Of a stretch of DNA of 64,000 nt, positions 7,227 to 63,479 are shown piece by piece. Made by a program: the position numbers and the translations under genes. The notes below the pieces were generated by a model. It ran no database searches and was not told the DNA's origin. It saw nothing but the letters and a program-made list of their open reading frames with translations. Origin of the DNA: Oikopleura dioica (Eukaryota; Animalia; Chordata). The stretch covers positions 6,324,001 to 6,388,000 of the forward strand of contig OU015566.1 of NCBI GenBank assembly GCA_907165135.1, given 5' to 3'. How positions within the stretch are numbered: position 1 is the first letter of the stretch; every line of letters begins with the position of its first letter.

Positions 7227-9658
7227 TCAATCAGCGTCTCTGATCTTTAGAAAAGACAGGTTTAAAGGGTTTTGTGTACCTTTGCTAGCGAAGCGGGCAC
7301 ACCCCCTATATCAGCAGCGTTTTTAATATATTCCTTCTCGTCGAAGTAAGCAACGACTTGGTCGATCTGCGGCCGCTGCTGGTCGCCGTGGCCGAGAAGA
7401 TACTCTAAAAGCGTTTACTCTGAATCGATCATCCTCCAATTCAAACTCGCTCGTCTTTTTTACCTTTCATGTCCTGGACGATTTGCTCGTCGACTTTTTT
7501 GAACTGGGCGATTTCGGCCTCTTCTGCTTTCGGCGCGTTTTCCAGGCTCACCAGAATGACTGACATGTTATCTCGCGAATTCTGAACAGAAAAGGATTGA
7601 AACTTAATTTCTGCAGCCGCAACCCGAGCTTTGCAACATGAGTAGAAGCTTTAGTCAGTAAAATATCACTGCATTTTTTTTTAGCCTTTACGAAAGATTT
7701 GACAGGACCCTTACTCAGGTTTCTACACAGTTAGCAAAGCACAGGCCGTTATCATTACCTTTGCGAGACACAAGTCTAACAGGTCGTTTGTAACATCTCT
7801 CTGATCTCGTGCTTTCAACGGTTCGAAATTCATTTTCAATCAAGATCGTAAGAAAATTTTGAGGTTTTTGATTGGCAGTCGATTAATTACTGGTTTCTTA
7901 TTGGCCAAAAAAGGCCTTGCACACCACAATTCTTATTGCCCTTTTTCTGAACCGCTGGCTGAAGTATATCTCTTTGAGCAGAACTCCTCGATCTGTTCAT
8001 TTTCCAAAACATCGTAAATGCCATCGCATGCGACGACGATGTAGTTGTCGTTTGCTGCGTCTCGGTCAACCACTGTCACGTCTGGTTCCGGCGACACCAG
8101 CTGCTCGTTGTCTGCCAGCTCAGTTTTTGTCTTGTAGTCGAAGTCGCCTGAAAATAACGATGAGACGCCCTTAATTTCATTTTTTCATACCAAGCGCTCT
8201 GGAAACAGCGAGAGAACCGTTGATTCTTTGTATCATCACTCTTCCGCCCGCGTTTTCTATTCGCCTCTTTTCGTCTTCGTTCGTTGGCTTGTGGTCATGT
8301 GAGGCAAAGGCGACTTCTCTGTTGCGAATAAGTAGCGTTCGCGAATCGCCGATATTGAAGAAGAAAAAGTGCTTCGGCGTTATAAGCACGCCTGTTGCTG
8401 TACTAAAAGTCAGTTTTAATTCGATCAAATTCACAAATTCAATTCAGAAGAGCTTTTTTTCAGCGGGTTTCTTTGGGAGACAATCGCTTGGCTGATGAAT
8501 ATTATTCAGGATGATCGGGATCAATTCTCAATCGTTTATGAAGGGTATAAAATAATAAAGATGATTCATCTTAGATGAATTTCAATAAGAAATTCTTATT
8601 CTTATTGAGAATTTAGGGAGAAGGATAAGGAGAAGCTAAAGAATCGAATAAAGCTGTCTTCAGATCTACGTAGTGGAATAGCCGTTGTCCAGACTCAGGG
8701 GAACTTAATCAAGTTCTTTTAAACTTTCAAAGACGCGAAATTTCTGCTATAGCAGCATCTGCATATGCAGCATAGCCTATGCTTGAAAGCGCATGTGCTG
8801 TGTCATCTCAAGATCGAAGAGATCCAAGACAGAATGTCTTGTTGCGAAAGCACACAAAGAAAGTCTGTCCTGATGCTGATTAATTTGTTTACTATTCAGA
8901 ATTTACTATTCATTTTATCGAACCATCAGTGATGGCCCATCACTGATATCCGAGTCTGAATTTGACTGACTCATCAGAAAAAAAGACTAGTCGTCAAGTT
9001 TTCCCTTTTTTCAGTTCTCGATTCCAATTTCTATTTGTCCAAAACTCAAAAGCTCTTACCATCCGCTCCGGTCGCCTCTGTCTTTCGTCTTCTGCCTCAG
9101 AACCGTGTCCCAGTGTCGGAACGCCTCAGAAAGACCTTGCTTTACTTCTTCGATGTCATATTTGTCGCCGCTCATGTCGCAAAATGGTTTTCTAGTGATC
9201 AGTTCTTCCACAAAGCTCTTTGCTGTTTCCTCGGCGACGTACTTTCCGGCGTGCCCGTCGAACACTGCGAACATCGACACATCTTGCAGCTTTTCTGACA
9301 AACCGATCTATAAAAAGGGTAATAAGGATAACTATCGAGTCGATAGGCTATCCACAAAACTTGAGTCCTGAGAAGACTACGATGAAAAGCCGCTACGCGG
9401 CTTTTTTAAAACGAAGCCGCGAAGCGGCTTCGCCTAATCGCCATTATAGTCTATTTTCATGTTTTGTCGATTTTTATTCGAAAAATTCCACTACGCGGCA
9501 TTTGAATAAAGGCTGATTTATAGACTAACCGTGGTAATGTGTGCATCTTCCATGTCGACTCTCCAGCCCTGCATAGCGCCCATGCTCCAAGTGAGTCCAT
9601 TTTTCGATCCCTCTTCCGATTTGATGTAGGTCAACGGTTTCGGCAAGAACGCTCCCAT
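7227..9658 (-). CDS. PPM1A/PPM1B: Protein phosphatase 2C, PPM1A/PPM1B type (multi-exon; C-terminal end uncertain)
   Basis: MGAFLPKP...[68 protein letters not shown]. Confidence 0.9.
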
Positions 9659-10773
9659 ACTCGATCAAATTCTAGTGCCGAGATTATCGTCCCTTCCTTC
9701 TGCGCGTTTTGATTGTTTCTCGATTGAGCAAATTGTCACGAAGCCGCTTCTCAGTTTAATTTTCTGAAAAGGAGAAAAACCGTGAAGGTCAAATATCACA
9801 AGAGCAAATGTTTGAAGAATACGAAAAAATAGACAGAGGCCGAACTAGCTGGGTGGAGCCGGACAATTCAAAATTCAGCTTCAATTGAATTCGCTTTCAT
9901 TTCTTTTCAGCGAAATAATGAGCGAAAACGCCCGAAAACGGAGAATTCGAAAAGTGGAGAATTTGACACTAGCGCTCGTAAAAAAGCTGGCCCTCGATCT
10001 TGATATTTAAAGATATTAGCGCGCTGTGACGGCTTATTATGAGAAACTGTTTTCCCTACGGCTTATTACTAATAAACTGAAATACTGTAAAACTCGTTTT
10101 GAAATGCGGTGTTTTCAATTCTCAGTACCCGGGCTCGGCAAACTGAGTCGCGGTCTAAAAGAAGCAAAGCGGCTACGCTAGAATTCTAAAAAAGATTAAT
10201 TGATGATTTTTTGTTGAAATTGGCAAATTATCGAGCACTAATTTGGTCAAATAAAACGAGAATTTTCTGAAAATGGATTCAGTTGAAAAGTGTTTTCAAA
10301 AAGGATTCTTCACTGCTTTCATTTGAAATTATGCTGGTCTCTCTTATAAAAAAAACTTTAAAAAGTGGACTCATCGCGAGTGAGTAATAAATCTACCGCA
10401 CATTTTAAATAAAACGAATCTTCTCGTAAGTCATAATTTTTTATTTGCTTGACCATGCGCGCTTTTCCCTTTTTTACAACGAGCTCTTTTTACGCTCTCC
10501 TTTATTATTTACCTCCTTTTCAAATCGTGAGTCTGCTCAGAACTCTTTCTGCGGTGGTAATTTATATCCGAATATCTCTGCCTATATACCTCCTTTATGG
10601 GACCTAATTGAGTAGAACTAATATTCAATAAATTCATTTGCTTCTTTGAGAATCTAGAGAAGCGTCGTCGAGAATTCAAATCATCCCTGCAATCTTGAGA
10701 ATCTCTTCCATGATTTCAAAACTAAATTTCGGTGAAAAATGATTTTTTTAAGAATTGAGAATCTTTTCGACAT

Positions 10774-10937
10774 GGGTTCTGAAACCTGTATAAAAACCTG
10801 AGTCAGGGCTTGGCTACCTGCGTAGAGACCCTGAGTCAGGATTTGAATACAGATACATTTGAAGCCGCGAAGCGGCTTTTCCAGAAAACACGGCACTTTT
10901 AAATCCTGACTCAGGTTTTCTGCACAGGTTCACGAGC
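10774..10937. mobile_element. MITE family A copy with internal GAA-loop hairpin
   Basis: Left GGGTTCTGAAACCTGTATAAAAACCTGAGTCAGG; right CCTGACTCAGGTTTTCTGCACAGGTT; AAGCCGCGAAGCGGCTT at 10862-10878. Confidence 0.75.
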
Positions 10938-11246
10938 TATTGCAGACCATGACTTAGATTTCAACAAAGATTCTGAGCCCTATTTTCAGCTTTCTTTTGA
11001 ACATGGTATATTACTTTTTTGAATAATAAAAGAGAGAGAGGAGTGAATAAAACGAAAATTCTGGCTTCGTTAGCAGACACATAAAAGACAGATATTAAAA
11101 ATACTGGCAGGAAGAAGAAATTTTAAATTTCAGAAAAAGTTGAAAACAAAGTTGGACGAAGTTGAGTCGCGGCTTCGAATAAAGGAGGAGTGAAACAGGA
11201 TAAATTATCTATTAAAGTTTGCAGCTCTAGTTTTCTTCAATTGGCT

Positions 11247-13366
11247 TCATCGTCTGTTTCCGCCTCTGCCGCCTCGTTTTTGAGCTCCTCCTCGACGAGC
11301 TCCGCCTCTTCCGCCGCCTCGGCCAGCGTTAACTTTTCGCCCCGCGCTCTTCAGCAGCTGGCTGAATCGGTCGTCCAAAGATGTTTCCTGAGATCCGGAA
11401 GTTTTCAGCGTGTCTCGGACCACTTGCGCTTTTCCTCGGCCTCGGCTAGGGAAAACATGATAAGATTTTGAAGACAACAAAGAGAAACTGAGCTCAGAAG
11501 TCTGCGCAATGCTAACTGAAAAGCCGCGCAGCGGCTTTTACAAATATAACCGCGAAGCGGCTTCGATTTCTATTCATTTCTGGCGATGAAACAACTTACC
11601 CAGATGGACCTCGATTCTTGATTTTGATCGAAACACCGCCAGTATTTTGCTGTCTTCTATTTCCCTGCTTTTGTCCTTGTTGATTTCCGCGCTTTTGGAC
11701 CTTGTTCTTGTTGGGTTGTCGCTGAATTCGCTGGTTGTTCTGGTTTTGCGCCTTTTTCGGAGCTCCACCGGCTTTCCTAAAAAAAGTAAATAAAGAAAGG
11801 AGAGATAAGAGCTTACTTTTGAGGAGTTTTTCTTGGTGCTGGCTGAACTGCCTTCTTCTGCGCGGGAGTGAGCGTCTTCTCGAGCTTTTTGTTGGCGTCG
11901 TTGACAGCCTTCACCGCCTTTTGAAGAGTCGCCCGAGCTTTGTTCAACCTGTCGATCGCCGCTTTTTGAGTGATGGTCTTCTGCGGGGCCTTTTTCTGGA
12001 CCTTCTTCGCTCCTCCAGCTCCAGCTTGGGTCTTTTTCTGCGCCTGCTTCTTCGATTTTTGTTAGTTGAATGTCGGATTTGATCCTTTACCTTCTGGGTC
12101 TGTTTTTGGCCTTGTTTCTGAGCCCCTTGGTTCTTTGGTTTTTGCCCGGCTTGGTTCCTCTTGGCGGCGCCCTGGTTCGCCTTGGCGTTAGCCTTGTTGC
12201 CCGCGTTTTTGGCTCCACGCTTGGGTTGCTGCCGGGTTCCGGCAGCTCCGGCCTTTTTAGGGCCGCCTTTTCCCTTGCTTTGGGTCTTGGAAGACTTGAT
12301 AATGTCGTCTATAAAGAGAGATGGTAAATAAAGGACTCTGAAAGGTGGATGATGATGATAATGAATCTGAAGTCGTTGTTGTTGGCGAATTGGTTGAATT
12401 TGAGTTGAAATTGAAATTCAGCTGGGTTCATTTTCGTTTTGGGCAACAGAGAGCAGGAGCAGTCCACAACATTCATTTCAAAAACAATCACTTGATTTGA
12501 ACGATTTTGACGATTTTCGTGACGAGCCAAAAGTTCGCCAAAAAGAACCGACGTCCCAAGTGCTGGTTTATAAAAGATGTGTGTGCCCACATTATTTTTT
12601 TTAATCGCGCATTTTGGGGGCGGCCGATGCCATTTTGGCCGAGTCAGATTCGCCCTGAGGAGAGTGATCAAGTCACTTTTCCTCAGTTTTCCGAGTTTTC
12701 TAGCGCAAGTTTTGCGGCGAGCGCTAGAAGGAAAAACGGGTCAAAAGTGGATTTTTGTCGCGAAATATTTGAGGTTGGAACTTTCGGACTTGCTTCTCGA
12801 AAGAAGCGGTAAACCAGCAAAGGCCGGATTTGCTACTTTACCGGGCTGGAGAGCCGGATAAAGAGCAAGTTTCCGGGTCGAAGAAAAACTTCTGACCCGG
12901 ATCCACTTTGGGGCACAAAAGAGTTGTCAAAAAGTGGTCAGAAATGACCTTGTTTTCTCGCCTCTAGGCAGGTCCAACTCTGCCTCGAGGGAAATGAAAA
13001 GTGACTCGTTTTGAAGAGTCTTAAAATTTGACCGGCTCTACGAAAAAACCGGCAAAAATTTTTGACAACTCGTGACTCAGCAATTCCACTGCTGAATCAT
13101 CTTTCGTTCTACTTTCGACTCGAATAAGCCGAAAGTATTAATGAAATCACGGAAGACACGCCCAAGGGCATGTCAACCTGGACCCGTGGGAAATCTGACT
13201 TTACCCCCATTCCAATTTGGAATTATGCGGATTTTCTAAGTTTAACAAAGTTTTAAACTTTAATTCTAGAGGAGGAAAGAGCCGGAAATTCGCGTGAAAT
13301 CGAGTTTTTCTGTTTGAATTTTTCTGTACCTAAGGCCATATCGATCTTGTCAGTTTGTCCAGCCAT
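11247..13366 (-). CDS. FYTTD1: UAP56-interacting mRNA export adaptor UIF-like (multi-exon, K/Q/G-rich)
   Basis: Spliced N-terminus MAGQTDKIDMAL|DDIIK (exon 13330-13366 joined to 12308) is a UAP56-binding motif like the DKIDMSLDDIIK of FYTTD1. C-terminal TSLDDRFSQL resembles the MTLNERF motif, followed by an RGG tail. No RRM, which argues against ALYREF. Confidence 0.75.
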
Positions 13367-13622
13367 CGTTAAGTTTTTTTGCTTTTCTTCTTAGTTTTTC
13401 TCAAAAAAGATTGATTTTTTTCTTTCAAATCGGCGTTTTTGAAAAATTGAGTTAGATTCTCGAAAACGGGAGCTTTTATCGCGCGCGACGTAGCGGGTGC
13501 CAGACGCGAGCAGCTGATTGGTCACTTGCCGAGTGGGCGCGAATTATTACTGAAGAGCGAGACAATACCGAAATTATTTCTTTTCTTCGGGAAAAGACGG
13601 GAATGGTCATTTTGAATTGCGA

Positions 13623-15111
13623 ATGATTGAAATTATTCAACTGGAACATACGAGGATAGAAGAATTGATTGGAAAGGCTCGAAAATTACCTAGGTTTTTC
13701 TAGAGCTAACGTGCTTCTAGAAAATCCCTATGAATAACTATATTTTCACTAAGAATATTTAATCTTCAGAACTTATGGCGGCTTTAAAATTATTTATCGA
13801 TTAGTCAGCTTTTTAGAGCAATTTTCATTATTATGATGTGCCATAAAATTATGATTTCTTAAGCTCAGTGCAACTGTGTTTGTGATTTTATAATTTTATG
13901 GTGCATCATTATTCTGAAAATCGCTATAAAAAAGCTGACTAAGCGATAAATCATTTTATAGCTGCCATAAATTCTGCAAATTATTAAAAAACAATATTCT
14001 CAATTCAAAGAACATAAAATCTGTATTGAGAATATTCAAACACAGAAAAACATATATATTGGAGCCCTTCTGCAGATTTTATCGTTGAAAATTTGGAGCT
14101 AGAATTCTCCGCTTATGAAAAACTCGAGCGTCTGATTCTGCACGAGCTACTCGGCTCCATCAACAGTCAGGGCGTGACTACAGTAGCTGTCAACGGCGAT
14201 GAGGATATTATTGGCCTCTGCTTGGCCCAGCGGTCGACGGCCGCGCTCCCCAGGGAGAGTTGGAACCACTATCTCAAAAGAATTTCGTCATCCGGGTACC
14301 GAGCCGCCTTTTCAAGGCCATTGCGTAATCATTTATTCTAGTTCGATTTGGGAGGGATCGCTGGAACTGATGAAATCTTTGAATAGCTCGCTCCAAAGTC
14401 TCCCCGAAATTGAGTGGCGAAAGAATCTCGCTTCTTCGACTTCCTGGGCGATGAGTTTCATCACCAACCACAGTCAGCTGATCAACCAGTTGGTCGAATA
14501 TCAAAGCAAAGTTGAGAAGCTCTTTTCTTCCGTCAGCTGCTCGATTCAAGCGAAAAATCAACAAGGAAACCAGCATGAAATTCTTGCAGTTCCATTTGTT
14601 CTTGTTTCCAAAGAATACAGGTGCGACTTTTAACAGTCAAAAAATGTGTAGAGGGGGCTACAGGTAGCGACATTTTTAGCGACAAAATCTGTCATCAATC
14701 AACCATCAGATTTAGACAAAAAACGGCTTTTCTTGTTGCCAAAAGACAAGCAACAAAATTTTACTGACTTGTGCGACAAAAAATATGTCGCATTTTTGTC
14801 GCTTTCTGGCGTCTCCGTCGAAATAACAGATTTCCATCCAAAAGCTTGACAAAATCTGTTTCAGAAAACAGGGGCTGATAACGATGATGCTCTCCGATCT
14901 GCACGATTTCTGCCGATTAGAGCGACTCCCCGAACTGCATCTTATCTACCCGACCGGCTTCGGATCGCTCTCCAAATCTCCTTCTTTTCATCAAGCTCAG
15001 CTTTCCCACTCAAGTTCTGAAAGCTCTTCTTCTTCAACTTCATTTCCTTCAAAAAACTCAAGTTCCAATTTTTCCCTGAATTTAAATTTGTTCACTTCAA
15101 GAATCGAATAA
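13623..15111 (+). CDS. GNAT-family N-acetyltransferase (arylalkylamine NAT-like; 4 exons)
   Basis: Model MIEIIQLEHTRIEELID|FIVENLELEF...TTVAVNGDEDIIGLCL...ILAVPFVLVSKEYR|KQGLITMML. VSKEYRKQG resembles GNAT acetyl-CoA motif A. The first intron needs a GA donor. Confidence 0.5.
13767..13976. mobile_element. AT-rich fold-back (hairpin) element in GNAT intron 1
   Basis: Imperfect inverted arms of about 80 bp: TTATGGCGGCT...TTAGTCAGCTTTTT...CCATAAAATTA versus TAATTTTATGG...AAAAAGCTGACTAA...AGCTGCCATAA. Confidence 0.7.
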
Positions 15112-15470
15112 ATCAAAAAAGATATGTCATGAAAGCTGCGGTTTTCCATTTTTCTTCGGCTCAATTATGGGATTTCGATCGTAGTAAAAAAGGGCTGAAA
15201 GATGGGTCCAATCAGCGAAAAGCGCTCTTTGAGATAGGCAGACACTGCATCGGTCAATAGACTTGATTATTCGAACAAAAAAAAAAACGAGGAAAAGAGA
15301 AAATCCCCGCGTTTTTTCTTCTTTCATGCGTTCTGATTTTTGCGATTTATTCTGCCTTATATTGAAAATTGTATCTGTCGCCTTAGAATTAATTTCTGAC
15401 TTCTTTGAGAATATTTGAATGATCACGTGATTGATCGTTTTTAAAAGGAAAAATATTTGCTAGATTCACG

Positions 15471-15603
15471 AAGCGACTAAAATTGCGACAAAATTTGCGT
15501 GGGCGGCTTTTTTGGGGAAAATGTCTCGAATTATTAGAAAACTGCGACAATTCTGGGCAAAATTTGTGCCGCCAACGCATATTTTGTCGCTTTTTTGTCG
15601 CTT
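15471..15603. mobile_element. MITE family C copy (GCGACAAAATTTGCGTGGGCGGC type)
   Basis: Inverted ends AAGCGACTAAAATTGCGACAAAATTTGCGTGGGCGGC and GCCGCCAACGCATATTTTGTCGCTTTTTTGTCGCTT; core shared with copies at 58210 and 63874. Confidence 0.65.
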
Positions 15604-15710
15604 CATCGTTGTTTTTAAAATAATCGAAGATGTTCAATTTTTAACAGAAAACTCCTAGAATGCGCGAAACGATAAGTTGAAAAATAATTCTGTGCCTTTT
15701 TTCTTCGTGA

Positions 15711-18700
15711 ATGTTTTTGGCCGACTACTTCGCCATAATCCGTAGCGATGCGGAATCGCAGTCTGGTTGTCGCATCTCCTGTCGAATCCCCGCCGAAGAT
15801 CATGAGCACTTGGCCTTTCCTGGCGGCTCGGAAAGCTTCGCTATTCCAAATGGCTGGGCAAACACCAAAACCCACCAGTCGCCGATGTTTCACATGCTGA
15901 CGAATACGAAAGTGGATGGAACGGTTTATTACTCCGTCTTTTTACCTTTTATACGGTCGTCAAGGAAAGAGTTTAGAATTAAATTCAAATTTTGAATCGT
16001 CAAATTCTCGAAGGAAGATTCTTTTACTAAAGAATATTTTTCATTTGAACTCAAAAAGGAGGTTGAAGAAGAGTACGAGCCGACCTGTTTGATGCTAGTC
16101 TCGAGCCACTCGTATTTCCAACCGCTGAAGAATGCATTATTCATGCTCTTCGACCAGCACGTCCGCCGCTCCGAAGATCTGGAAAAGCTCCTGGCACACA
16201 TTCTCGCACAGCAAGTCCCAACGCCCGGTTGGAAAACGCCTGTCCGCTTCAATCTCGGCGACAGAATGACCCAGCACGCGGTTCAAGCGCCTCAATCCCC
16301 GACGATTCCGGCAACGGGCGATTCTATTGCAAAATTGTTGAATTACCTTGGCCCTAGAAACTTGATCACTCTAGTCGTGTTGCTTTTGACGGATTACAAA
16401 ATCGCTCTTTTCGGAAAATCTTTCTCCGCTCTTGCCGAAGCCTCCCGAGCTCTCGTCGCGCTGATCTACCCCTTCACCTACACAGGCACTTTGATTCCCG
16501 TGCTGCCCAAGAACTTGGCCGACTACCTCATGTCTCCCGTTCCATTCCTCGTAGGCGTCCACACCGATATCTGGGAATCCCGCCGTTCGGACTGCCCCGA
16601 CGTCGTTGGCTGCGATATTGACGGTGGAAAGCTCGTTATTCCGGACAATTTCGTCGTTCCCAAGCTTCCGCATTCGGTCGACAAGGAGCTTGTTCATAGA
16701 TTGACGCTTGTTGCTAAGGAAAGGATGCGAATCATCAGTGTTCTTGTTTAAAGCAAGTGGGGCTCGCGAACCTGTGCAGAAAACCTGACGCAGGGTCCAA
16801 AAATCTTTAATGAAAAGCCGCGGAGCGGCTTTTTTACAACGAAGCCGCGAAGCAGTTTTGCAAGGGTTAGAAAATTGATAGTAAGATAATTTTGCGAAGC
16901 CGCTTGTGCTTTCTCAGACCCTGACTCAGGTTTTCAACACAGTTTACCGAGCTCAGACACAAATATAAAATGAATCCTTGAAAAAGCCTGCTCTTGTCTC
17001 CGCCGATCTGGCTTTTCCGCCCAAAAGCTCGCCCAAAGCCCGGGCCCCGTTCTCGACAAAGAAGTTCGCGCAATTTTCCTGATGACCCTCGTCCGCATTC
17101 TCTCCAACTACCGTTCCTCGCTCCAGTTCAGCCGCATCCACCCAGAAGTCCAAACAAAGCTCAACCGTCAAGAATTTCTACAAAGCGCAGATCCCCAAGA
17201 TTTCAAAGTGAAACTCTCCGCCGCGCAGAGTTTTCAAGTTTTCGTCCAAGAAAGAGGACCCTCTTTCCGCCCACTGGATTTATTCGACAATTTGATGGAA
17301 GATTTCGATGAAAAGAACCCGCCAGAATTTGATACGCAAAGTATAACGCTGTCCAGGGAGGTGATTAAAGTAAGGAACGAGTTCATGGTCAATGAAATGC
17401 CGAAATGGAACGATCGGGAAGGGATCTTTATTTCATTGTAGTAGTTTGGTTTAATTTTTCATTTTGAGGGAACAAAGTTCTTTTCTTGTCGATTTGGTCA
17501 TTTTCAGGCGGCGAAGAAAAAAGGCGCCGCGTAAGTTAAAAATCGATTTTTCTGATTCTGTAGATCCCAAATAAGCCTCGACTTATCTGAGTGCATGCCT
17601 GCGGAATTAATGAATTTCAGGAGCGTGGTTCGCAAAAAAATACAAGTAGGACAAAACAGAGTGCAGTAAAAAGAAAAGCTACGGTGTCTATTAAATCGCA
17701 TTAGTGCAGCTTTTGGCGAACCTAAGTGTTTAGTAATGGACTTGAAACTTTTGAAGCGGAGTCGATTCCTGACCTGTCGGATTTGTCCGTCATGGGCCAA
17801 AGAGAAAGACTGCTCGATGGCAAGAATCAGAACAGATTTCAGTTTTGGCTTAAAGCTCGATCAAAATTCAAGGAAAAGAAATGGAATTCAGGGTCTGTGT
17901 TAACAACCTGACTTAGGGTCAAGAAAGGGCCGAAAAGCAGCTTCGATAGAATGAATAAGGTAGATATGGATGATTATTCTAGTCTTTCTGTATTAAAGCT
18001 CTCTCTGGACCTTGATTTAGGTTTCTACACAGGTTTTCGAGGACAGGGACATGATTTCTCGTAAATTTTATTGCTTCTGCAGAAAACCTGAGTCGGGTTT
18101 AGAAATCTAATACCAAGTAGCGGGTTTAAATTTTTGCTCTGAGCCTGACTCAGGTTTTACTCACAGATTGCGGAGCACAGTCCATATTCTACCACTGCTG
18201 AACTGGCATTCTTTCTTGTTTTCACCAAAATCCAAAACTGTTAACAGGCTGAGCCACAAACGAGCGTCAGAATCGTCCACGAAATCCAGCCAGTTTCAGT
18301 TGTCGAGCTGGATACAGAAAGTCAACGTCACCAAAACGTGCTCGACGAGTTCCTACGTCATGTGGAGGCAAATTGCATCACCGAAATGCGAAAGAAAATC
18401 CCTGGTGCTTGTCGAGCCCTGCAAAAGTCGTTTATTCGAGCGCGACTGTTGGAAACGCTCAAGAATTGGAGCGAAGGAGTGATGAGCCAAGACTCCGATC
18501 CGAAGGGTTTGAGCGATGCGCAGTTTTATTATATTCAGTTGCTGCTCGATTTGACACTCAAGAACTCGGAAAAGAACAAGGACCAGTATCACGTCGCCAG
18601 CTCGGTGATCGCCATTTCCGCGGAGCTGGGAAGAAAGGTCGAGACGGAGCAAGGGGCGATAAGACAGCAAGTGATGTCCAAGGAATAGGTCAAATGGAAA

Positions 18701-23578: not shown

Positions 23579-23836
23579 AATTGAATCTGATAACCCCCTT
23601 AACTCTTCACCTCCAAGTGCCATACTCTTACACTTCGGTCTTTCCAATCTATGCCTATATAAGTCTATTTATTTAAAAAGAAAACATGTAATTGTGAACT
23701 TATATTCTACTGTTTTTATTATTAATACTCATAATCGGCATTCCAACTGTATGTTACTGTATCAAGAATCAAGATCTTCTTCTTTTTTAATCCCTTTTAA
23801 CCCAAACTCAGATCCTGTTTACAAAATCTCTGGGGT

Positions 23837-23943
23837 CAGCATCCTGTGTAGAATCCCTGAGCTATATTCTGAAGAGCTTAAAACCCGTGCAGCTTCGAGG
23901 TTTTCAGAACCTGACTCAGGTTTTCTACACAGGCTGCCGAGCC
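23837..23943. mobile_element. MITE family A copy downstream of SBF
   Basis: CAGCATCCTGTGTAGAATCCCTGAG ... CCTGACTCAGGTTTTCTACACAGGCTGCCGAGCC. Confidence 0.65.
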
Positions 23944-25294
23944 TAGCAAAGGCCTGTTTCCATTCAATTAGATGTTTGCCCATGACTTCGTGTTTTGTCG
24001 TTGGAGCCATTTGTTCGTTCCCAGGCTGCAAAAAACACAACCATCCCAAAAAATAATTCTTTCTGTAAAATTCAAAAACCCTTTCTTTCCTTCCTTATTT
24101 TCAGAGAGGCTCAGAGAAATCGAGCACTGGCGAAAAGCTCTTGGAAAATTCGATGACGCAACAGGCGAAAGGGCCGACTTGGACACGAGTTCTGACGATT
24201 GTACTGTATTTAATCTTCGCCAGTTTGCCAGCACTTTCTTTCGCCATCTTTTATTCGTCCTTATGGGCAACGGTTTTTGAACTTTTTCATTTGCTAATTG
24301 CGCGTAATGATAGTTTATGCCTGGGCTTGATTTTTGATTGGCTAAGTGAGAGAAAGAGTGAGATCTGATAGGCTGGGGGTGCTCAAAGCTATTTATTTTA
24401 GATTTTGTCCTCCCTAGCCTAGGGTGGGCGATATTTTCAAAGCCATTTGGTACCTAGCCATTCAGCATCCCCCCAACATTTGCCCCCCTTTCGGCCAATC
24501 AGATACTAATATTTTACGCTCGAGCCAATCAAAGGACGCCAGACCCCCAGAATTCCCCCTCTCCCTCGTCCTGGGGGCATAGCCCCCTGGGTTAGGTTTA
24601 GGGTTAGGGGCAGCCCGAATGATAACCTCCTACTACCCCCTTGTTCGGCCTACCATAGGCCGTACCATCATAAGGACCTAAGTATTTTCGAATTTCTCGT
24701 TAACGAACACCCAAAAACCGAAAAACAGACCGGGACCATGAACTTCGAACGGGAGAACGAAATGACGAATTCATCCCTTGCAATGCCCGCGGGCGGCCGC
24801 CTGCATCGCTCGCTGTAGAAGAAGCCACCTCCTCTTCATCCCTCTTCTTTTCTTCACTAGTGTTTTATTTCTTCTCGACCCGCATTATTTTATTATTTTC
24901 TTCAATTCGTTTTCTTGAGTTTCTTCCTCCCTTATTTTCCTTCCTCGCTCGTTTTTACTTATTTTGATAGTCCAACTTTTGACTTTTACCTCCAAAAAAC
25001 AAACAAACAAATAATATACAAAATTTAAACAGAATCTTCTTCCTTGATTTCAATTTTCAAAACTTGATTTCAACTTTTTTTTTCTTCAATTTTATTTTTC
25101 TTTTTGCGACATTTTTTATCTCATCTGTCTTATAAATATGCTTAGAACAAGCGCTGCAAAAGTACTTAAAAATCTTAAAAATTAAAAACAAAAAGGTGGG
25201 ACGCCTTTTTGTCCCACCTTTTTGTTTTTTAACAAAAAAATCAAAAAAGGACGTTTTTTCAAACGAAAAATCTTCAGAAAGCCAAAAAGCTATC

Positions 25295-27957: not shown

Positions 27958-28767
27958 ATGAAATTGAACACTAAAGAGAAGCTTTTTTGTGCAAGGAATG
28001 TTTCAATAGACATTTTTGATTGATCGAGAGATTAAAAAAAAAATTCTGAAACTGAACAAGTCTTCTTTGGACTCTTCTGACTGGTTTATCTCTAGCATTG
28101 GCCGTTTTCTATGTGCATCGGCTTATTTGGATCGATTTCATTCCAGCTGGGTTTGGCAACCTGAGTAAAGAACCTGAGTCAGGCTCTGGGAGAGCTAAAA
28201 TAAAAAGATGCGTGGCGGCTTTTTCAAAAACGAACGTATATAATTTATAGCTCTTCCAGAGCCTGACTCAGATTTTTTACTCAGGTTGCCGAGCCCTGCA
28301 TTCCAGGTTCTGGAAGCAGCCTTGTCGTTGCGGAAGTGTGGATGATCGCTGATGCCGTTGCGATTTTTGTTGGGAGCATTATTGGGATAAGCGGCTTTCT
28401 GGGAATGTTTTCTCGTTGCGCGAAAAATGTTCATCTCTTTTTTATTTTCTACTGGTTGACATGGATAGCTGTAAGAATTAAACTCTTTTTAAGATTGAAA
28501 ATGTTTAAGAATCTCTTGGTTGGTGTTCCGTATGCTTGCTTTCTCATCGCCGGAAGCATCACGGTTTTTTTACTGTACCCCGACATTTCTGACGAAGGTA
28601 TACTCTCATTTCACGGCGAAATTTGGGTTTACTACCTGCTCGGAATTATAATCATGATTCTCGGAATATGTTTGCTGATTAATTTCATTTATGCTCTGAT
28701 TTTATGCCCTCGATACTGTTGCTCGAAACGAAAAAACACCGTCAAACCTCTGGAAGAAAAAAATTAA
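27958..28767 (+). CDS. Small four-transmembrane protein (tetraspan-like topology, family unassigned)
   Basis: Model MKLNTKEKLFCAS|LLWTLLTGLSLALAVF...IPA|GSGSSLVVAEVWMIADAVAIFVGSIIGISGFLG...|NLLVGVPYACFLIAG...YYLLGIIIMILGICLLINFIYALILCP; at least four hydrophobic segments. Confidence 0.6.
28149..28296. mobile_element. MITE family A copy filling almost an entire intron
   Basis: Inverted arms of about 45 bp: GGGTTTGGCAACCTGAGTAAAGAACCTGAGTCAGGCTCTGGGAGAGCTA and TAGCTCTTCCAGAGCCTGACTCAGATTTTTTACTCAGGTTGCCGAGCCC. Confidence 0.85.
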
Positions 28768-32390: not shown

Positions 32391-35323
<2,933 letters not shown>

Positions 35324-36928: not shown

Positions 36929-36959
36929 TTTTATATTTTTTTGATTTTAATAAAACAGA

Positions 36960-40761: not shown

Positions 40762-40833
40762 GTAAGAAACAAATTGTTTCTTAGTCGCGTAGCCACTAAA
40801 ATTCAGTGCTGATGTTTTCAAATAGCTAAAAAC

Positions 40834-41575
40834 TCACTGGACAGCAAAGCGTTTCCACGATTTCCAGGCATCATCCTCTTCGAATTCATCCGAAAACAAG
40901 CCAGTGTATTTGTTAGGCTTTGTCGTTTTCCGGCTTTCGAATTCGAGCGTCTGCCTCAGTCCTTCTCTTTTTATTTCGATGATATTTAGTAGCTCCATTT
41001 CACTTTTGATGAATTTTCTGGCTCTTTTCATTTTAACCTTCGTCTTGTCAATCAGTCCCGATTCATTTATACCCTCATCCGCCGATATATTTAACTCCTC
41101 TGCTACTCGTTTTGCCTCCTTTAGACTCATTTTAAAATCTTTCATTCCATTCAAGTACTTTGGCATAAAGAAACCCCCACCAAGCTCTGGCAATGTGGTC
41201 TTCACCTTGTCTGGCCGGAGAACTGTACCCTCTGCGGTGTTCCACAAAGTTCCAATGCAATTACATTCGAGGCATCTAACCAGCTGTTCCTGATGCGCTT
41301 CAATGATCGTTTCATCGTCAACGGGCTTGATCTCTTCCTCTTCTTCTGTGCCAAATTTAAAAATCATTGAAGACGACTGTCAGACTCGCGAAATGAGTAA
41401 AAACGTCGGGTTCTTGATCTATACCGAGCTCGTAATTGCTATGATCTTAAGCTTCCTGCCCTTCAAAAATGCAGAGCAAAGAAGACATCATCGTCTTGAG
41501 TTTGTTCAAGTTCGTATTTAAATTTTAAAAATACAAAAAATAAATTCTTGAGAAATGAGTCTCTTGTGTCGCCAT
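40834..41575 (-). CDS. Uncharacterised protein (start uncertain; apparent frameshift near 41360)
   Basis: 177-aa ORF 40834-41367 extends into an upstream frame across an A5 run; no family recognised. Confidence 0.45.
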
Positions 41576-41820
41576 AGGAAGAAAATTTCTTAAACCAAAA
41601 CATTTCTGACAGACATATAGACAATAAACAAAATATAAAACAAAAGGGCGAATCATTTCATTCAAGTTCACATCCGAAAAGACGCAAATCACCGTAAAAC
41701 GTTGCCTATAAAATGGCACGTATTCTCGATTGCATGTCATATTTACTCAGTTACTATTTGCCCCGAACTTTTTATAAAAGAGATTTTTCCTTGCTCTAGC
41801 ATTTGTTCCAAATATCTAAG

Positions 41821-44752
41821 ATGAGGCTTCCTCTTCTTTTTTCGGGAATTTTTTGCCACGATGGTCCCCACTCGTGGCCAATAAATAGACTTACAAATAC
41901 AGAGATATCAGTAAAAGTCAACAGTAATTGGCTCGACAAAGGAGGTTACGAGTTCGAACTTTTTATCACTCCTTCTGGAGATTTGGCTAACAATGCAACA
42001 CGTATGTACTGGTTTTTTGATTTTATGCTTATTCGATTAAAGACAAATGGGAATTGTGCTTTGACACACCGATGCCGACTGGAGAGACAAGCGAACAAAT
42101 GCAACAAGCCCGAGAGTTGCCAGGTCTTTCGCTGGGCTTCAGAAATTGCAATATTTTTCAATACCCTGGTACTCATCGTTGTCTCCGCGACTGCGATTCG
42201 CATCCAAAAGATGAAGAAATTGGCTACAAAATTATCGCTAATCCTCATTCACTTGCGAAATCAGATTTCTTTGGGAACTTTTACTTCGTGACTCATGATG
42301 ACAGCCAAAAACACGGGGATGAAAACACACGACAAGCATATTTTAGTAAAAGCGAAGTTTCACGCGCGGAGCCTGTATATATAAGTGCCATCTATCTCAT
42401 CGACCTTGATCAAGAATTCATTGCAATCGAAGAGGTATTGAGTACTCAATGCAAAGGCTCTGTTTGCAAAACACAGGATTTTGTGCAAGACCCAACTGAG
42501 GAAAGCCAGCTACTTAACAAAGAATCCAGTAAGTGGCTACCGTGGACGCCTGAAGAACGATACGAACGAAACCAGAACGAAAACGATCCCTCGACAGACG
42601 CGGAAATCGCTCCAGTTACTGACGATTCTTTGGAAATACGAGTGTTGCACGTTGACATCGCAAGAAATTTCCACAGCCTGGAAACGTTGGAAAAAATACT
42701 CAAAGAAATGGCCGTGGTGAACATGACGCATCTTCATCTACATGCGACGGATGATGAAGGTTGGAGGATTGAGATTCCTGCCTTGCCAGAATTAACGACA
42801 ATCGGAGCTCATCGATGTGCTCCTATTCAAAACGAGCCATGCATGATTCCTCAGGTTACTAAACAATACCTCAGAACAAGGTTAATTAAAAAAATTCAGT
42901 ACGGAAGTGGGTTATCTAAGGACGCACCACAAAATGGCTTCCTTAGTGTCGACCAGTACAAGCAGCTCCTGACGACTGCTGCCGACCTTGGAATCCACGT
43001 CATAACAGGTAGCCTCGAGTGAACTTTCGAGTGTCTTTGAAGTTTAATTTGAGAAATAAACGGCCCTGGACACGCGCGCGCTGCTATAGAAGCAATGAAA
43101 CTTAGAAACGACGAAACATTCTTCCTTCACGATCCCAATCAGACCGTTTTCGACGTTCCTAGCGTGCAATTCTTCACCGATAATGTAATGAATCCCTGCC
43201 AGGAATCCACTTGGACTTTCTTGGAGACAGTGATTTCTTATCTCAAATCCGTGCACGACGAATTCAATGGTTTCCATGAAATCATTCATCTTGGAGGCGA
43301 CGAAGTAGCACATCTAAATTATGCTGGGGATCAAAAGTTCCCCTGGGAAAATTTTCCGTCTTGCGAGAAAATGATCGAGGCAAATAGACAAGATCCAAAC
43401 AGCTCTTGGGAAAACGGAAGACCCACGGATATGAGCGAGCTTCAGTGGTATTTTACTTCAAAGTTCATGAAAATTGTCAAGGTAAAACGCTTCCGTTAAT
43501 ATTGACAGGCTCCTAAATCAAACGTCCTCAGGATAATGGCTTTACAGCGGGAGCTTGGGAAGAGTCCTTCCTGGACAAGTGGACCGATAAAGGATAGCGG
43601 TTCTAAATCAAGGAAGATATCTGACTTGATTTACGATTTTCAACCGCAAGTAGCGTTTCCAAAAGTCCAGCCACTCGAGAAATTCGGAATGACTGCTTCT
43701 GACAATGTCCACGTATTCGTCTGGAACATTGACTGGGAATCAGAAGTGAAAGACTGGCCATACCAATTTGCAAACGAAGACTACAAAGTTGTCATGACGC
43801 CCGGTTAGTTGAGAGGAGTTCGAATTTGAACATGATTCTTTCTTTTGTTAGCTACGCATCTGTATTTGGACCATCCGAATGAGCCGCATCCTTCGGAAAC
43901 GGGATTTTACTGGGCGAATAGATTTACTGATATGAAGATTATTTACGGCTTCCAGGAAGGGCTTTTATATCACTGAATGCATCAATCATAAGAATAACCC
44001 CTTCATGTGGCGATAAGTCGTAAGCTCCAAAAAAGGTCTATGATTTGTACAAAAACTCTGCTTTCGCCATGAATTGGTCCCCTCTCGGCCCCGGAACTCC
44101 TGTGCCACCAAACTACAAATGCGATGCAAACGGGCAAGATGCTTGTGTCAAACTAGAAGAGTCGAAAAAGTCAAACATTGTTGGTCTTCAATGCTCAACT
44201 TGGAGCGGTAAGGCCGCGGAAGATTTCTCCCCTATCATATTCAGAGTCGCTGCTAACATCCGAACTGCTCCTGAAAAATATCTTCCCTCGAGTGTACGCT
44301 TGCGCAGCCCGGGCTGCTCAACCTACCCCAGTTTTTGACACGGCCGAAACTCCAGAATTCGATGCCGATTTCACTAAATGGGTTTCAAAAGTCAAGCCTC
44401 ACATGCAACGACTTTCAGATAACGATGTCGATTTCTATTTAGGAACGGAATTTACACAATGTTAAAACTTTTGAAAGTGAAACTGGTGTAAATTATAAAT
44501 GAAGCGCCTCCTGGAGCAAAATGCGAAAATGGCAAGGTCCTAACAAATCACCAGATTCCGGGAATCGACGTAATTGTCGAGGAGAACGATTCTATTCGCG
44601 AAGACTCTGTCTTCACCGCCCAAGCTACTCTTGGGAAGACGAAGAGCCGCTCCGTTGAGATTACCTGCGAATCTGCTGGCGATGGAGATGGGGGTGGAAG
44701 CGCTTCAGTTGCGTTTTTCTCCCTTTCTATGATTGCGATGCTCCTTGTTTAA
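41821..44752 (+). CDS. Beta-N-acetylhexosaminidase, GH20 chitobiase type, with predicted GPI anchor
   Basis: RVLHVDIARNFHS, HLHATDDEGWRIEIPALPELT, EINGPGHARAA, catalytic IHLGGDE, YLDHPNEPHPSETGFYWANR, APPGAK; N-terminal signal; C-terminal GGGSASVAFFSLSMIAMLLV*. Confidence 0.88.
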
Positions 44753-44868
44753 TAAAATTGACAAATCAGCTAATGAGCAAGATGTTTTATTGGAAGGCAG
44801 TTTGTAAGTTAGACATGTGATAATAAATTTTACTAAAATGGAATTCGGGAGGATGAAAGAAAGGAGAT

Positions 44869-47800
44869 TTAGCATTCTGTATTCGACTGCGGATTCACAG
44901 CATCGCGGAGGAGGACGTCTTTCAGATGAACGAGGGCTTGCTTCAGGCTTCGGTGGTTGCCCTGGTTTCGTAGCCAGTGCGTTGGAAGATTCTTAAGAAA
45001 GAATTAATACTACAAAACTTTCTGAGGGCTTACCATCGTTTCTGCTCGCTGAGGATGAACAGAAGCGATCATCTTGTCCCACTTCGAAGCAGGTGGCTTT
45101 CCACCGTCCAAACCTTCCATGTACTTCATATAAGCATCCGAGTGAAGAACCCTCGTCGGTTTGGGAGGATTCGTTACCAACGGTCCAATCGCTCGTGATT
45201 GAATTTCTCCTTGTCGAACTAAAAATCCGTGAAGATGTGAAACAAATTGTCTCTTTCTTACCGTTTGTGTGGGGTTTCATCGGGCTCTGAGCAATTCTAG
45301 TGACGGTGTGTGTTTGAGCGACGGTTTGAGCTTGTGCGATTGGATTTGCTGCGACGTACTGTTGCGGTGTTGCTGGAGGCGGGTGTCCATTTGCTTGGCC
45401 AGGGCTTTGAGGCTGGAATGCTACGAAAAGGAAGGTTAGAATGATGTGGAAAATATGAAGAAAAAATAAGTTTTTGTTTGATAAATGAAGTTCATGCAAA
45501 AATAAAAGAGAGTTGGGATGATAAATCGTCGTTTTTTCTTCTGAGAAAATCTTACTGGAAGAAGTATTTAAACTTGATATCTTGACAGGCTTGAGGTTCC
45601 CAAGAGTTCTATTTGCTTCCTTTGTCTTTTGTTGAGTACTTGCCTCGGGAAATTCGACTGGCTCAAGGATAGTCGCAAAATCATCAATCGGTGCGATTGG
45701 TATTTTTCCTTTTATAAGTTTGTTTCTCAGCGATTTCACAGAATTTAATGCGTCACTGTGCACTTGCTAAAGCTTCGAGTTACTTACCCGTTGTTTCTTT
45801 TCAAAAGCTACCTTTGTTTTTATCAATTTTGCTTGTAAATCATGTAAATCTGCGAGCGTTCGGTGTTTTTTCTCATGTTTGCTTGTAATGTCGCTTTGAG
45901 ACCCCTCAAATGTCTCCTGATTTGCCCCAAACCCTGGCTAACAGATTCTTTTAACAGGCATATCGGGCTGTTGATGCGTTAACGAGGGCTTTAGTTCTTT
46001 GAATGCTTTCCTTGAGCTGGGTCTGAGGGCTCGCAAAGGATGTTATCTAATGACTCCCAGTTTGGCGCCCATTCGTTGTCATTAAAAATGGGAATAACAG
46101 GCACCTGCGCGACGTGACGACTGCGCTCAGAGACCCAATACTTACCCTGCGAGTGGTTAGAATCTTCGCCGACGGAGTCAGATTCGAGCATTTCCATTTC
46201 GCGGCGTCGCTTGTCTTCGACTTTCTGTTGGTCGAGTCTTTTCTGCGCCTCCGCGACCTAAAAGGATCAATTCAAAATGAAACATCAACAGACCAGCAAT
46301 TTACCTTTGCTTTGGCCTTATCTTCATATTCCTTCTTCTCTTCAGCAGAAAGCGCTCGCCAACGCTCTCCGATGATCTTTGACAAATCGCCAAAGCCAGA
46401 TTGCGGGTTTTCCTCTCGAACTTGTTTATTAACCGCGGCTGTGAAGAGAGTGTATCCAGTTTGAGATAAGCCAGAACCTTTCGTGCTTCCCTTCGTTCTT
46501 TTGCCTGTTTTGGGTGTTTCGGTTCGAGAGCTTTGCGTTTGCTGGAAAAAACGATTAAAAAGGGAAGGAAAAAATGATAATTACCTGCATTTGGGGAGTA
46601 AACGGCGCTCTCTGTATAGGTACAGGAGAAGAAATTGCCGGATAGCTCGGCCCAGGGGAATTAGCGAATGGATGAGGGCTACAGATGCATTAATTCCTTA
46701 TGATCTCTCTCTTTTTTGAACTGAGATATACTCGCCAAGTTTGCCGATAAATTGAAAACAAAAACGCCTCGAAGAGAACCCAGAAAATGATCGATTTTAG
46801 GACTCGAAATTCGCGCGCATCTCATTCCAAAATCGATAATTTAGGGGTTCCCTTCGAGGGATTTATGGAAAATCTTGGGTTGTTCTTTCGTGTTACCTGT
46901 GGGACATTGGCGGCCTCTGAAGATGTGGCATCGGCATTCTATGCATGAATCCCGGCGGTGGAACTGGCGAGCCAGGGTGATGATAAGGCGATCCAGGATG
47001 CATCGGCGGACGAGCATGCATTTGCGGCGCAAAACCCGGTCGAGGAGGAAAGCCCTGGTGCGGGTGGTGCTGAGGCTGTTGGTGCTGCGCTGGAGTTGCA
47101 GCTCCGTTTTGCTGCGCTTCGAATGTTCGTTTGCGAATTTCCGCTTTGACCATTTGATCGAGCCGTGGCGAAGGAGTCGGGAGCAGCGGAATCGGCTTGT
47201 CGGTGAAGTAAAAGTACTCGTCGTCGACGACGCGGTTCGACGGAGAATAACGCTTGAAGCTTCGAATCTTTTTCAGCATCAATTTCGGCTGTCCGTTTTC
47301 GATGAATTCTTTGTAGTTCGCCTCGTGGAAGTACACGTGATTTTCCTGGATATTCACTGGTCGCATTGTTTGGAAGTCAGGCTTGACGAGGACGCAGCAT
47401 TTTCCGCGAATCGTATGCATCGGAATTATGTGCTCCGTTCCAGTCATGATGAGTTCTTTGAAGTGAAAGTTTCGCACTGGCTCGTGTTGGCACTCTTCGG
47501 GGCGGTGGTACATAATGGCTTTGCACATGACGTTGTTTTGATGATCCTTCCAGATTTTGACAATCCTGGCGATTCTTGGCCCGCGGGTGTCGTTTACCGA
47601 GAGGTAAACGCAGTCGTCGATTTTGTAGAGAATCGGAGGCATGTTTTGCTGCGGGTGGGGCATGTGATATTGCAGGAAATAGGTACAGCCGTCGTTGCCA
47701 AGGTTGATTTCGGTCTCGATATCTTCTGTTTCTACTTGGAACATGTTTGACATTGCGTCGACGTCCCATGTCTCGCCGTTTTGCGGGGAAAAGTCTCCTT

Positions 47801-50289
47801 CTTCACGTCGCTTTTTCAGATCTTCCAGGGAGTCTTCTATATCCCCCAGGCCATAAGCACAAGCAGGGGAGGAATAAAGCTGTCCGCTTTTTGTCAAAAC
47901 ATCTCGTTTTTCGATAAATTGCTTGTGCAGCTCCAGCGAAAGCTTCCAAATCTCATCTCCCGGCTCACATCGTTCGCGAATCGCCTCAAAGAGCGAGAAA
48001 ACATGTCCTTGATAGACGTCGAGTCTTCTGTATCGCTTCGCGTCAAGCCAAACGCCAATGTCTCCCAATTTTCTCGGTCGATTTCTCTCCACTGGAATAA
48101 AATCGGCGAGGACTTCTTCGATCTTTTGAAAGTTCGAATTCGACAACATGTGTTTCTGCAAATCGCGCATCATCTGCTGAAGGAAGCTTTGAGGATCCTG
48201 AATTTTGAACACTGGATTTGGATCTTCCCGCGTTCCGTTTTCGATCATGTGCAAACAGTCGATCGCCACCTTGTGGAGAATCAGCGCATCCTGGTAGATC
48301 GTCGAACCGGGCTCGTTATAAATCGTCGCGTTTTCGAAGACAAGTAGGAGTTCTTCCATGAATTCTTCAATGTTCTTGTAGCCGTTTTCCTCTGGGATTT
48401 TTTTCACCCGCGCTTGGATTTTATCCAGATCCATTGGTCGCTTCACGACGCGATAATAGTCCGGCAGCTCGATTTTCGATGGCAGCGATTGAAACATCAT
48501 CGCGAGATTTCGCCCCATTCCGTCTTCTTGCTTATTGACTCGGTGAAGGATGAAATCGTACTTGGTCTTTGGTCCGGCTCTCCAGCCAGGTTGAGTCATT
48601 GTCTCCGCTTTTCCTACCTTCTCCGGAGTGACAGGGATGTTCTTCTTTTGGCAAATCTCTTTGACCTTGTTGGTAGCTACTTGTTCGAGAATATTGGCGT
48701 CGATGAAGACTTGGGAGTTTGGCTCGTTGTATTGTTTGGCGTTTTTGCACATAAGACTAATGTCCTGCATTAGTTCTTCGAGAGAAGAGTACTGCCCGCT
48801 GGAGATCTTTTTGTCGATGCTGCCCATGTCCATCGGCTCCTTGATGATCTGGTAGTAGTCTGGGTAGATTTCCGGATCGGGTTTGACCATGAAGAGCGCG
48901 CAAACTTGCCGCCCGGTTGGATCTTTCTGGCTAAAAAGCGCGTTGTAGACAGATCGCTGGAGACGATTTCCTTTGGCTCTTTCTTCGTTGTTGTCCTGCG
49001 CGGAATTATGCGACTTGCGCCCCTTTTTCTTTGGCTCTTTTTTCTTCGGCGAAGGTTTTGGCGACGCGGAGCCTTCAGACATTTGATCGCCGAACTGCGC
49101 CTCGATCTCGATTCTCTTCGTCCTGGCGACTCGCATCATTTGCGTCGCGTCCATGAAGATTTGCGACCCCTCCATGTTGTATTCTCGAGCGTTGTTGCAC
49201 ATGAGCACGATGTCGTCTTCCATCTGCTCGAGGTTTTTGTATCGCCCTTTTATCACCTTCTGGCGGATTTTGTCCAACGCGATCGGCTAAAAATGAAGTT
49301 ATTGTCTAAAAAAGACTACAAAAATTGAATAGGGTAAATGACAGAAGTCTTTCGTACCTGTGTAATATCTTCATAATAATCAGGATATTGTTTCTTCGAG
49401 GGGAGCTGCAAAAACGGCCCGGAAATCGGGTCTCCATCGCTATCTGTTAGCAGCACGATGTTATCAAAGAACAGCGAGTACGGATCATCATTATCTCCGA
49501 TCACGTAATCGTTTTCATCGTCCGGCCTTTCTGGCTTCACCGACGCCGGTTTCACCGCAGTCGGTCCCTTTTTCGCCGGAGTTGCTTTTGCCGATTTCGC
49601 TGCTTTCGGAGTTTTGGCCGTTTTTCGCGGTCGTGGAATCGGGATTTCTTCCTCAGACTCCTCCTCTGCTTCGTCTTCCGATTCCTCTTCGCTGGAACTC
49701 GCATTGCTAGCCATTTTCGCCAGCGTCTTTTTGAAAACTGCCCATAGTGCGCAACCATCAATATACTCCTGTAGTGGGCTCGGAAACAAAGAATTTGAGC
49801 TCAGGAAAAGGTAAGGAAAGCGATTCATAAAAAGCCGCGTAGCGGCTTTGTCAGAATAGAAAGAATAGAATAAAAGGGTTTCCTCAGGATTCTATTCAAG
49901 TTGTAGAGCCCAGTTCCTTGTCATTTACGTCGTAGAACTTTTTCGCGTTGTCTGTGAGTAGTTCTACGTCTTTTTGAAAAAGATCGAAATCAGGATACTC
50001 GTCGTTTCTTATTTTTCGCTGGATAGTGGAAAGATCAATTGGGGATTCGATGATTTTGTAGTATTCCGGATTCGAGCGTTTTTGAGGGAGACGGTTGAAA
50101 GGAGCGCTGATAAGGTCCCCGCTGTCGTCTAAAATGGGGGTGATAAGCATGGAAGATAGAAGGGAAAACTTTACCTTTGTAAGTTTTCATCGCGTCGAAG
50201 ATTTCTTGGAACTTGGCTGGCTTGAACTTTTTGGGACTTGGGGTGCCCGCGACGGAGCCACCTTTGCGGCGAGCCCCGCTTTTTCCCAT
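44869..50289 (-). CDS. PBRM1: Polybromo-1 / BAF180 (5 bromodomains, 1 BAH, HMG box)
   Basis: Tandem bromodomains (PDYY...P.D/PMD...NA..YN), RYRRLDVYQGH-type last bromodomain, BAH (RPEECQHEP...GKCCV), HMG (TGYTLFTAA...GERWRAL), C-terminal PPKPTRVLHSDAYMKYMEGL and LPTHWL. Confidence 0.92.

Positions 50290-58398: not shown

Positions 58399-63479
<5,081 letters not shown>

Follow-up and report, generated by a model that had tools for sequence, protein, structure and literature searches.

GC-rich mini-hairpins of Oikopleura dioica are internal modules of a high-copy miniature transposon best called hAT-like

Abundant short GC-rich palindromes, often paired, are characteristic of the repetitive extragenic palindromes and bacterial interspersed mosaic elements (REP/BIME), which are mobilized by RAYT transposases of the Y1 HUH type. 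REPs are not known to carry terminal inverted repeats or 8-bp target-site duplications, and they are HUH-dependent. Mini-hairpins of the d(GCGNAGC) type, described by Hirao and co-workers, have their known natural examples in phage and plasmid single-strand origins, not in eukaryotic transposons. In hAT elements, 100–200 bp of each end are needed. The cis-requirements of Hermes, Ac, Tag1, and Tol2 extend to ~100 bp inward, and short motifs are repeated there in fixed phase. In the case of Hermes, two BED domains cooperate in binding a palindromic AAGT/AAGC pair flanked by AT-rich DNA, and the phase of this pair to the tip is critical (PMC10368747). Here, we analyzed perfect GCCGC-NNN-GCGGC hairpins in a 64-kb stretch of DNA (the window) from the larvacean Oikopleura dioica, corresponding to positions 6324001-6388000 of contig 4 (OU015566.1) in a 64.28-Mb assembly of 19 contigs. 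The hairpins are not free units but subterminal modules within one high-copy nonautonomous DNA transposon, a miniature inverted-repeat transposable element (MITE).

A pattern search of the 64 kb found exactly six sites, at 9389 (loop TAC on the plus strand, i.e. GTA on the minus strand), 9416 (GAA), 10864 (GAA), 11523 (GCA), 16817 (GGA), and 49834 (GTA). Dinucleotide shuffles of the window gave 0.04 expected sites, and none of the 100 shuffles reached six. The stems reach 7–9 bp, as AAAAGCCGC/GCGGCTTTT or CGAAGCCGC/GCGGCTTCG. An earlier sequence-only reading of the window had listed the same six hairpins with these stems, and all six were recovered. The decayed partners that it placed near 11550 and 16840 are both visible in the sequence, and its three doublet loci were confirmed, with a pitch of 27–28 bp. 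Genome-wide, the pattern occurs at 3042 sites, compared with 37 for the reversed control pattern; the sites pair up 28 bp apart and also form mirror quartets (GTA-28-AAA-56-TTT-28-TAC).

The carrier was characterized in 20 hairpin-bearing pieces of contig 1 and 30 loci best matching one full quartet. The copy statistics given below are based on 320 kb of sampled DNA and on whole-genome pattern counts, and matches to the terminal repeat were found by a Hamming scan. Alignment of 28 copies resulted in one element of ~243 bp with the ends CTGGGCTCGGCAACCTG...CAGGTTGCCGAGCCCAG, the tip sequence CTGGGCTCGG, and a terminal inverted repeat of 37 nt (CTGGGCTCGGCAACCTGTGTAGAAAACCTGAGTCAGG). From the tip inward, an arm consists of the terminal repeat, a linker of ~22 nt, the outer hairpin H1 (AAAAGCCGC-GTA-GCGGCTTTT), the inner hairpin H2 (CGAAGCCGC-RAA-GCGGCTTCG) 28 bp on, and a variable centre, after which the mirror image follows. 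The hairpins begin ~55 nt inside the 37-nt terminal repeats and are not located at the termini. A compensated difference separates H1 from H2 at the outer two stem pairs (AA:TT versus CG:CG). The two arms of the consensus are mirror images at 101 of 103 positions, making the element a near-perfect palindrome, and the spacings between modules are constant (22–23, 28, and 56 bp) while the sequence of the linkers drifts. In the sampled DNA, 185 of the 186 perfect hairpins fall in regions that match the element model, and for 175 of these 185, one or more terminal repeats are close by. All six hairpins of the window align to the family consensus, in agreement with their earlier assignment to intact or decayed copies of a "MITE family A". 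The doublets of the window are H1 and H2 of one arm, and the solitary hairpins are remnants in truncated or internally deleted copies.

An 8-bp target-site duplication with 7 or 8 matching positions was found at the predicted junctions of 17 of the 27 full copies, and it was perfect in nine; the chance of one such match is <0.001. Terminal inverted repeats, a duplication of fixed length, small size, lack of coding sequence, and high copy number (1254 first-look candidates; 1571 terminal 15-mers within one mismatch) are the features of a MITE. The 8-bp duplication indicates cut-and-paste movement by a DDE transposase of hAT-like character, and, judged from these features, the element is best called a hAT-like cut-and-paste MITE. 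Such MITEs with subterminal repeats are a well-known kind of element, and the 8-bp duplication and short terminal repeats are shared with hAT elements carrying subterminal repeats (STR1/STR2 of Hermes; Ac, Tag1, and Tol2). T at position 2 is combined with A at position 7 in 15 of 32 duplications versus 30% expected (p = 0.03), a weak preference that agrees with the hAT target consensus. Many deletion derivatives retain the terminal repeats only, which is typical of abortive gap repair.

Divergence from the consensus was measured by class in copies not picked for hairpins. It was 2.6–2.8% in the 9-bp stems, 7–10% in the terminal repeats, 13–24% in the linkers, and 27–35% in the centre. Genome-wide counts of 3042 perfect and 1976 one-mismatch stems (897 in the control) give ~3.5% per site, and those of the terminal 15-mer (546 exact and 1571 within one mismatch) give ~11% per site. 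The stems are the most conserved part of the element, which bears out the constraint on the hairpins claimed from the window, and it is unusual that subterminal palindromes are conserved about three times better than terminal repeats. Singleton (private) changes are equally frequent in the stems and the other classes (~1–1.7%), and the differences between classes reside in variants shared between copies. The equal singleton rates indicate that the constraint acts on the spreading lineages and not on inserted copies. Therefore, the stems were kept constant as the spreading lineages diverged, and inserted copies decay neutrally.

The loops behave differently from the stems. GNA/TNC loops account for 1812 of the 3042 sites (59.6%), ANA/TNT loops for 829 (27.3%), and others for 401 (13.2%). 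The d(GC-GNA-GC) sequence motif is thus carried by the majority, as the sequence-only reading had stated, and its rule that G and A are fixed with only N varying is valid for the six sites of the window but not genome-wide. In arm orientation, the H1 loops are GTA (55%), GCA (10%), GAA (7%), ATA (6%), and GGA (3%), and the H2 loops are mainly AAA (47%) and GAA (31%). The most variable position is the middle base in H1 (34%; first base 19%, third base 13%) and the first base in H2 (45%; A in 55 and G in 39 of 100). The loop columns diverge at linker-like rates (12–23%), and only the A at the third position (5–13% variant) seems to be under mild constraint. Arms with variant loops are more diverged overall. 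The loop variants were also considered as subfamily markers, but arms with GCA, GAA, GGA, or ATA loops do not group together more closely than with GTA arms. Because the variant-loop arms form no subfamily and are more diverged, the variants are attributed to recurrent changes in older copies. Thus, the four loop variants of the window are the GTA of H1, the GAA of H2, and two decay products. Coupling of the loops between the two arms of one element was not significant for H2; arms of the same element are somewhat more alike than those of different elements (0.83 versus 0.75). A tandem array of GAA-loop hairpins was rejected, since two GCCGC-GAA-GCGGC sites 53–59 bp apart occur at only one place in the genome. 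In 5 of 203 aligned hairpins, the loop is the exact reverse complement of a standard loop, and its neighbor in the same arm is normal (9385-9405 in the window, L006:6578-6702, L045:915-1066, L004:4469-4695, and L011:5059-5201). Spacer inversion of short palindromes is known from chloroplast noncoding DNA. The flipped loops are spacer inversions, for which the palindrome must have paired at the DNA level, with itself or with a mirror copy.

We propose that the hairpins are probably paired subterminal transposase-binding sites, as in Hermes, rather than independent signals for REP-like or rolling-circle mobilization or for splicing. Their position, their phase, the conservation at the sequence level, and the constraint at the lineage level all fit a Hermes-type model. 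The AAGCCGC/GCGGCTT half-sites, in fixed phase with the tips, would serve as paired double-stranded binding sites for the mobilizing transposase. A BED-type finger of this enzyme would bind the half-sites in the way in which the palindromic AAGT/AAGC subterminal repeats are recognized in Hermes. Lineages losing the half-sites would stop spreading, and the stems would consequently outlast the terminal repeats in conservation; copies, once inserted, would decay neutrally. As in the Hermes sites, the Oikopleura half-sites begin with AAGC and are flanked by A- and T-runs. Unlike in Hermes, the half-sites are longer (AAGCCGC), stand 3 bp apart, and form perfect 7–9-bp palindromes, of which each arm has two. 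Moreover, the Oikopleura element is mirror-symmetric at both ends, whereas the ends of Hermes are asymmetric. The binding function itself is inferred.

Several observations weigh against this proposal. The tips are CTGGG...CCCAG and not the CAG/TAG (YARNG) termini of hAT elements. A simple half-site model would not call for the compensated outer pairs of H1 and H2, which, like the loop flips, point to pairing. The asymmetric loop (purine-N-A) is unexpected at the site of a symmetric dimer. A rigid dimer should also not tolerate the spacer of a second foldback family of ~100 bp, in which the AAGCCGC/GCGGCTT core has a 2-nt spacer (TCGAGAAGCCGC-TT-GCGGCTTCGAG) and is followed by a central GCCGCGC-loop-GCGCGGC hairpin and then by the mirror hairpin with AA. 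This family was found outside the window (L017:6115-6210, L019:3660-3780, L016:6150-6260, and L015:5465-5560), and AAGCCGC-NN-GCGGCTT occurs at 733 sites genome-wide versus one in the control. Finally, no autonomous element with the ends of the MITE was identified in the comparison, which covered the hAT copies on contig 1. In favor of a hAT-like mobilizer, the hAT dimerization domain (PF05699) does have nine matches in the genome, four of them on contig 1 (636914-637105, 641782-641973, 732634-732825, and 737494-737685) and the others at 380299 and 393172 on contig 4, 13847453 on contig 5, and 1859826 and 1689025 on contig 3. Seven of the ORFs (four on contig 1, two on contig 4, and one on contig 5) score equally, with open frames of 177 aa, and may represent a young multicopy hAT element. 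The contig 1 copies form two pairs, 4.86–4.87 kb apart within each. No exact terminal 15-mer was found within tens of kilobases of these copies (636.9, 641.8, 732.6, and 737.5 kb), and the only listed perfect hairpin near them is 3.9 kb away. Also on the favorable side, the P-element RNase H-N domain was not found in the genome; this is a weak negative because the control was silent as well.

An alternative explanation is that the palindromes act as DNA structures. Extruded cruciforms or single-stranded DNA (ssDNA) hairpins would be recognized by a host factor or the transposase, or would impede gap repair following excision, and the stable GC-GNA-GC fold would matter. In 59.6% of the sites, the closing C·G pair and the C-GNA-G core are those of the stable d(GC-GNA-GC) class (PMC13037366, PMC3201870); this likeness is one of sequence, and the 27% ANA and 13% other loops depart from it. 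This explanation is also favored by the 9-bp palindromy, which is kept in both H1 and H2 despite the different outer two pairs, by the inverted loops, which require pairing of the palindrome in vivo, and by the same stem core in the second family with its different spacer. The single hairpins of the window fold as DNA with −7.9 to −11.8 kcal/mol each in a nearest-neighbor calculation, and a sheared G·A pair lies outside this model. The pattern of changes, however, makes a structural role unlikely. Among the 203 aligned hairpins, one core pair is compensated, and the remaining departures from pairing are uncompensated. Genome-wide, compensated transitions at pairs 2–5 were found at three, one, two, and two sites, respectively. 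At pair 4 (the G:C beside the closing pair), there are 74 single G-to-A changes versus two compensated A:T pairs. The compensated total of ~8 over the four pairs compares with ~2 expected at uniform age (~300 single changes expected), and mixed copy ages can explain this excess. Single changes at pair 4 on the GNA strand gave 39 A·C and 33 G·T mismatches, showing no wobble or strand bias. As compensation is rare and there is no wobble bias, selection for pairing is not apparent in the variation of the family, and what is conserved in the stems is the sequence and not the structure. In addition, the complete element folds as a single 100-bp foldback (−209.8 kcal/mol, z = −29), and its four mini-hairpins are absorbed into it. 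Together with the 27% ANA loops, these results do not support the selection on ssDNA or RNA structure that had been suggested from the window. The neutral decay of one MITE without covariation, which had been set against that suggestion from the outset, largely accounts for the variation within the family.

It is rather unlikely that the palindromes are passengers without a function of their own, perfected by template-switch correction and kept uniform by the youth of the successful lineages. After insertion, they decay like the rest of the element, as the equal singleton rates show. The copies that carry all four hairpins in perfect form show the lowest divergence in the terminal repeats and have intact duplications; those without hairpins are older. 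The loop variants, which mark no subfamilies and occur in more diverged arms, are consistent with the passenger explanation as well. However, lineages whose terminal repeats are 8% different and whose linkers and centre are 20–30% different have stems only ~1% apart, and youth is insufficient to explain this. The pitch is also constant though the linker sequence drifts.

A further possibility, which we consider doubtful, is that AAGCCGC/GCGGCTT is a signal read through its structure, either by a eukaryotic DDE transposase or by a protein of the host, and common to families A (3-nt spacer) and B (2-nt spacer). If true, it would parallel, in a eukaryote, the recognition guided by hairpins in the REP/IS200 systems of bacteria. 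Such a signal would be in accordance with the compensated outer stem of H1 and H2, the loop flips, and the tolerance of both spacer lengths, but the lack of covariation speaks against it.

A role at the RNA level, in which the hairpins or the foldback help to define introns derived from MITEs, end transcription at the T-run, or supply small-RNA pathways, is very unlikely. It would suit the intronic copies, such as the one at 16758-16956, which constitutes most of the intron between the DENN exon ending at ~16745 and the next in-frame exon from ~17000; introns in this genome are typically ~49 bp (PMC8008620). Introns of MITE origin are known from another larvacean, Fritillaria borealis (Henriet 2019, as cited in PMC11282704). 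The foldback MITEs of that species resemble the present family in the larvacean host, the short palindrome, the many intronic copies, and the CAG ends, insofar as they are presented in PMC11282704, and no GC mini-hairpin modules are described in the part of that work cited there. The element reads CAG at its end on both strands, and the strong fold of the whole element would also be in accordance with an RNA function. Nevertheless, there is no wobble-preserving bias on either strand and no covariation, the palindromic element is inserted in either orientation, and the constraint lies on the lineages and not on inserted copies. The window has no match to an Rfam family.

For the HUH-type systems, Y1_Tnp (PF01797) has no match in the 64-Mb genome, with a control that was positive in 6 of 14 genomes, and Helitron_like_N (PF14214) has none either, with control genomes that were also silent. 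The view that the hairpins are REP/BIME-like units mobilized via ssDNA hairpins by a Y1 nuclease or a Helitron-type rolling-circle enzyme, or by peel-and-paste transposition, as the sequence-only reading had proposed, can practically be discarded: the likeness is superficial (short GC hairpins, often paired, in thousands of copies), and, unlike REP/BIME, the Oikopleura carrier has 37-nt terminal inverted repeats and 8-bp duplications, which HUH elements do not make, its hairpins are away from the termini, and the genome has no Y1 domain.

This tempting reading of a REP/HUH system in an animal is thereby removed, and the anatomy (ends, duplication length, and module lattice) is now given for what is seemingly one of the commonest repeats in a very compact chordate genome, in which 44% of the repeats were left unclassified (PMC8008620). 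No description of the family in Oikopleura was found in the literature searched. The family is well suited, as a natural case, to studying how subterminal sites are recognized by hAT-type transposases. The exact element model also helps studies of intron gain, because many copies are intronic in a lineage known for transposon-derived introns.

The copies in the window were delimited by alignment to the consensus. A partial copy on the minus strand at 9356-9503 (model columns 23-188) contains H1 at 9385-9405 with the flipped loop (TAC on the plus strand) and H2 at 9412-9432 (GAA), and the H1 of its far arm is decayed (~9484-9500). The other copies are on the plus strand. The internally deleted copy at 10806-10937 has both terminal repeats, with CCTGAGTCAGG at 10830 and CCTGACTCAGG at 10905, and a lone hairpin at 10862-10878 (GAA); an additional arm fragment is present at 10770-10807. 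At 11481-11582, a partial arm with a decayed terminal repeat carries a perfect H1 (11519-11539, GCA) and an H2 with a 1-nt deletion (~11546-11565, GAA). The intronic copy at 16758-16956 is decayed but spans the full element (model 3-243), with a perfect H1 (16813-16833, GGA), a decayed H2 (16840-16860), and a partly deleted right arm. The decayed and internally deleted copy at 49774-49945, whose ends (TGGGCTCGGAAAC.../...GTAGAGCCCAG) are recognizable, has one perfect H1 (49831-49849, GTA) and adjoins a bromodomain/BAH gene. Four further members of the family have no perfect hairpin. The 152-bp copy at 28147-28298 has a perfect 8-bp duplication and a decayed H1, and the 116-bp deletion derivative at 53361-53476 has both terminal repeats and half a hairpin only. 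Two hairpin-less deletion derivatives of 117 and 119 bp are located at 23830-23946 and 59040-59158, respectively. Short ORFs of the window carry pieces of bromodomain/BAH, DENN, GRAM, and GH20 domains.

Each terminal repeat contains the palindrome CCTGAGTCAGG, whose core TGAGTCA is an AP-1/GCN4-type site. Within one mismatch, palindromes of this type have 35 matches in the window versus 0.6 expected, at positions including 489, 10797, 10830, 22802, 25398, 26672, 28173, 53387, and 59066. A metagenome scan for the terminal motif with H1 gave no matches and is uninformative on age or spread. On contig 1 at 2665396-2666430 (L019:9396-10000 and L020:1-430), a full copy has inserted within the CCTGAGTCAGG motif of another copy with the duplication GTCCTGAG. 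The centre of the inserted copy harbors a nested, unrelated element of 0.78 kb with the ends GGCATAACGCAC...GTGCGTTATGCC and a duplication of ~9–10 bp. The copy at L036:1473-1729 has the duplication GTAAGGGT, which resembles a 5′ splice site, and its insertion would duplicate the donor site.

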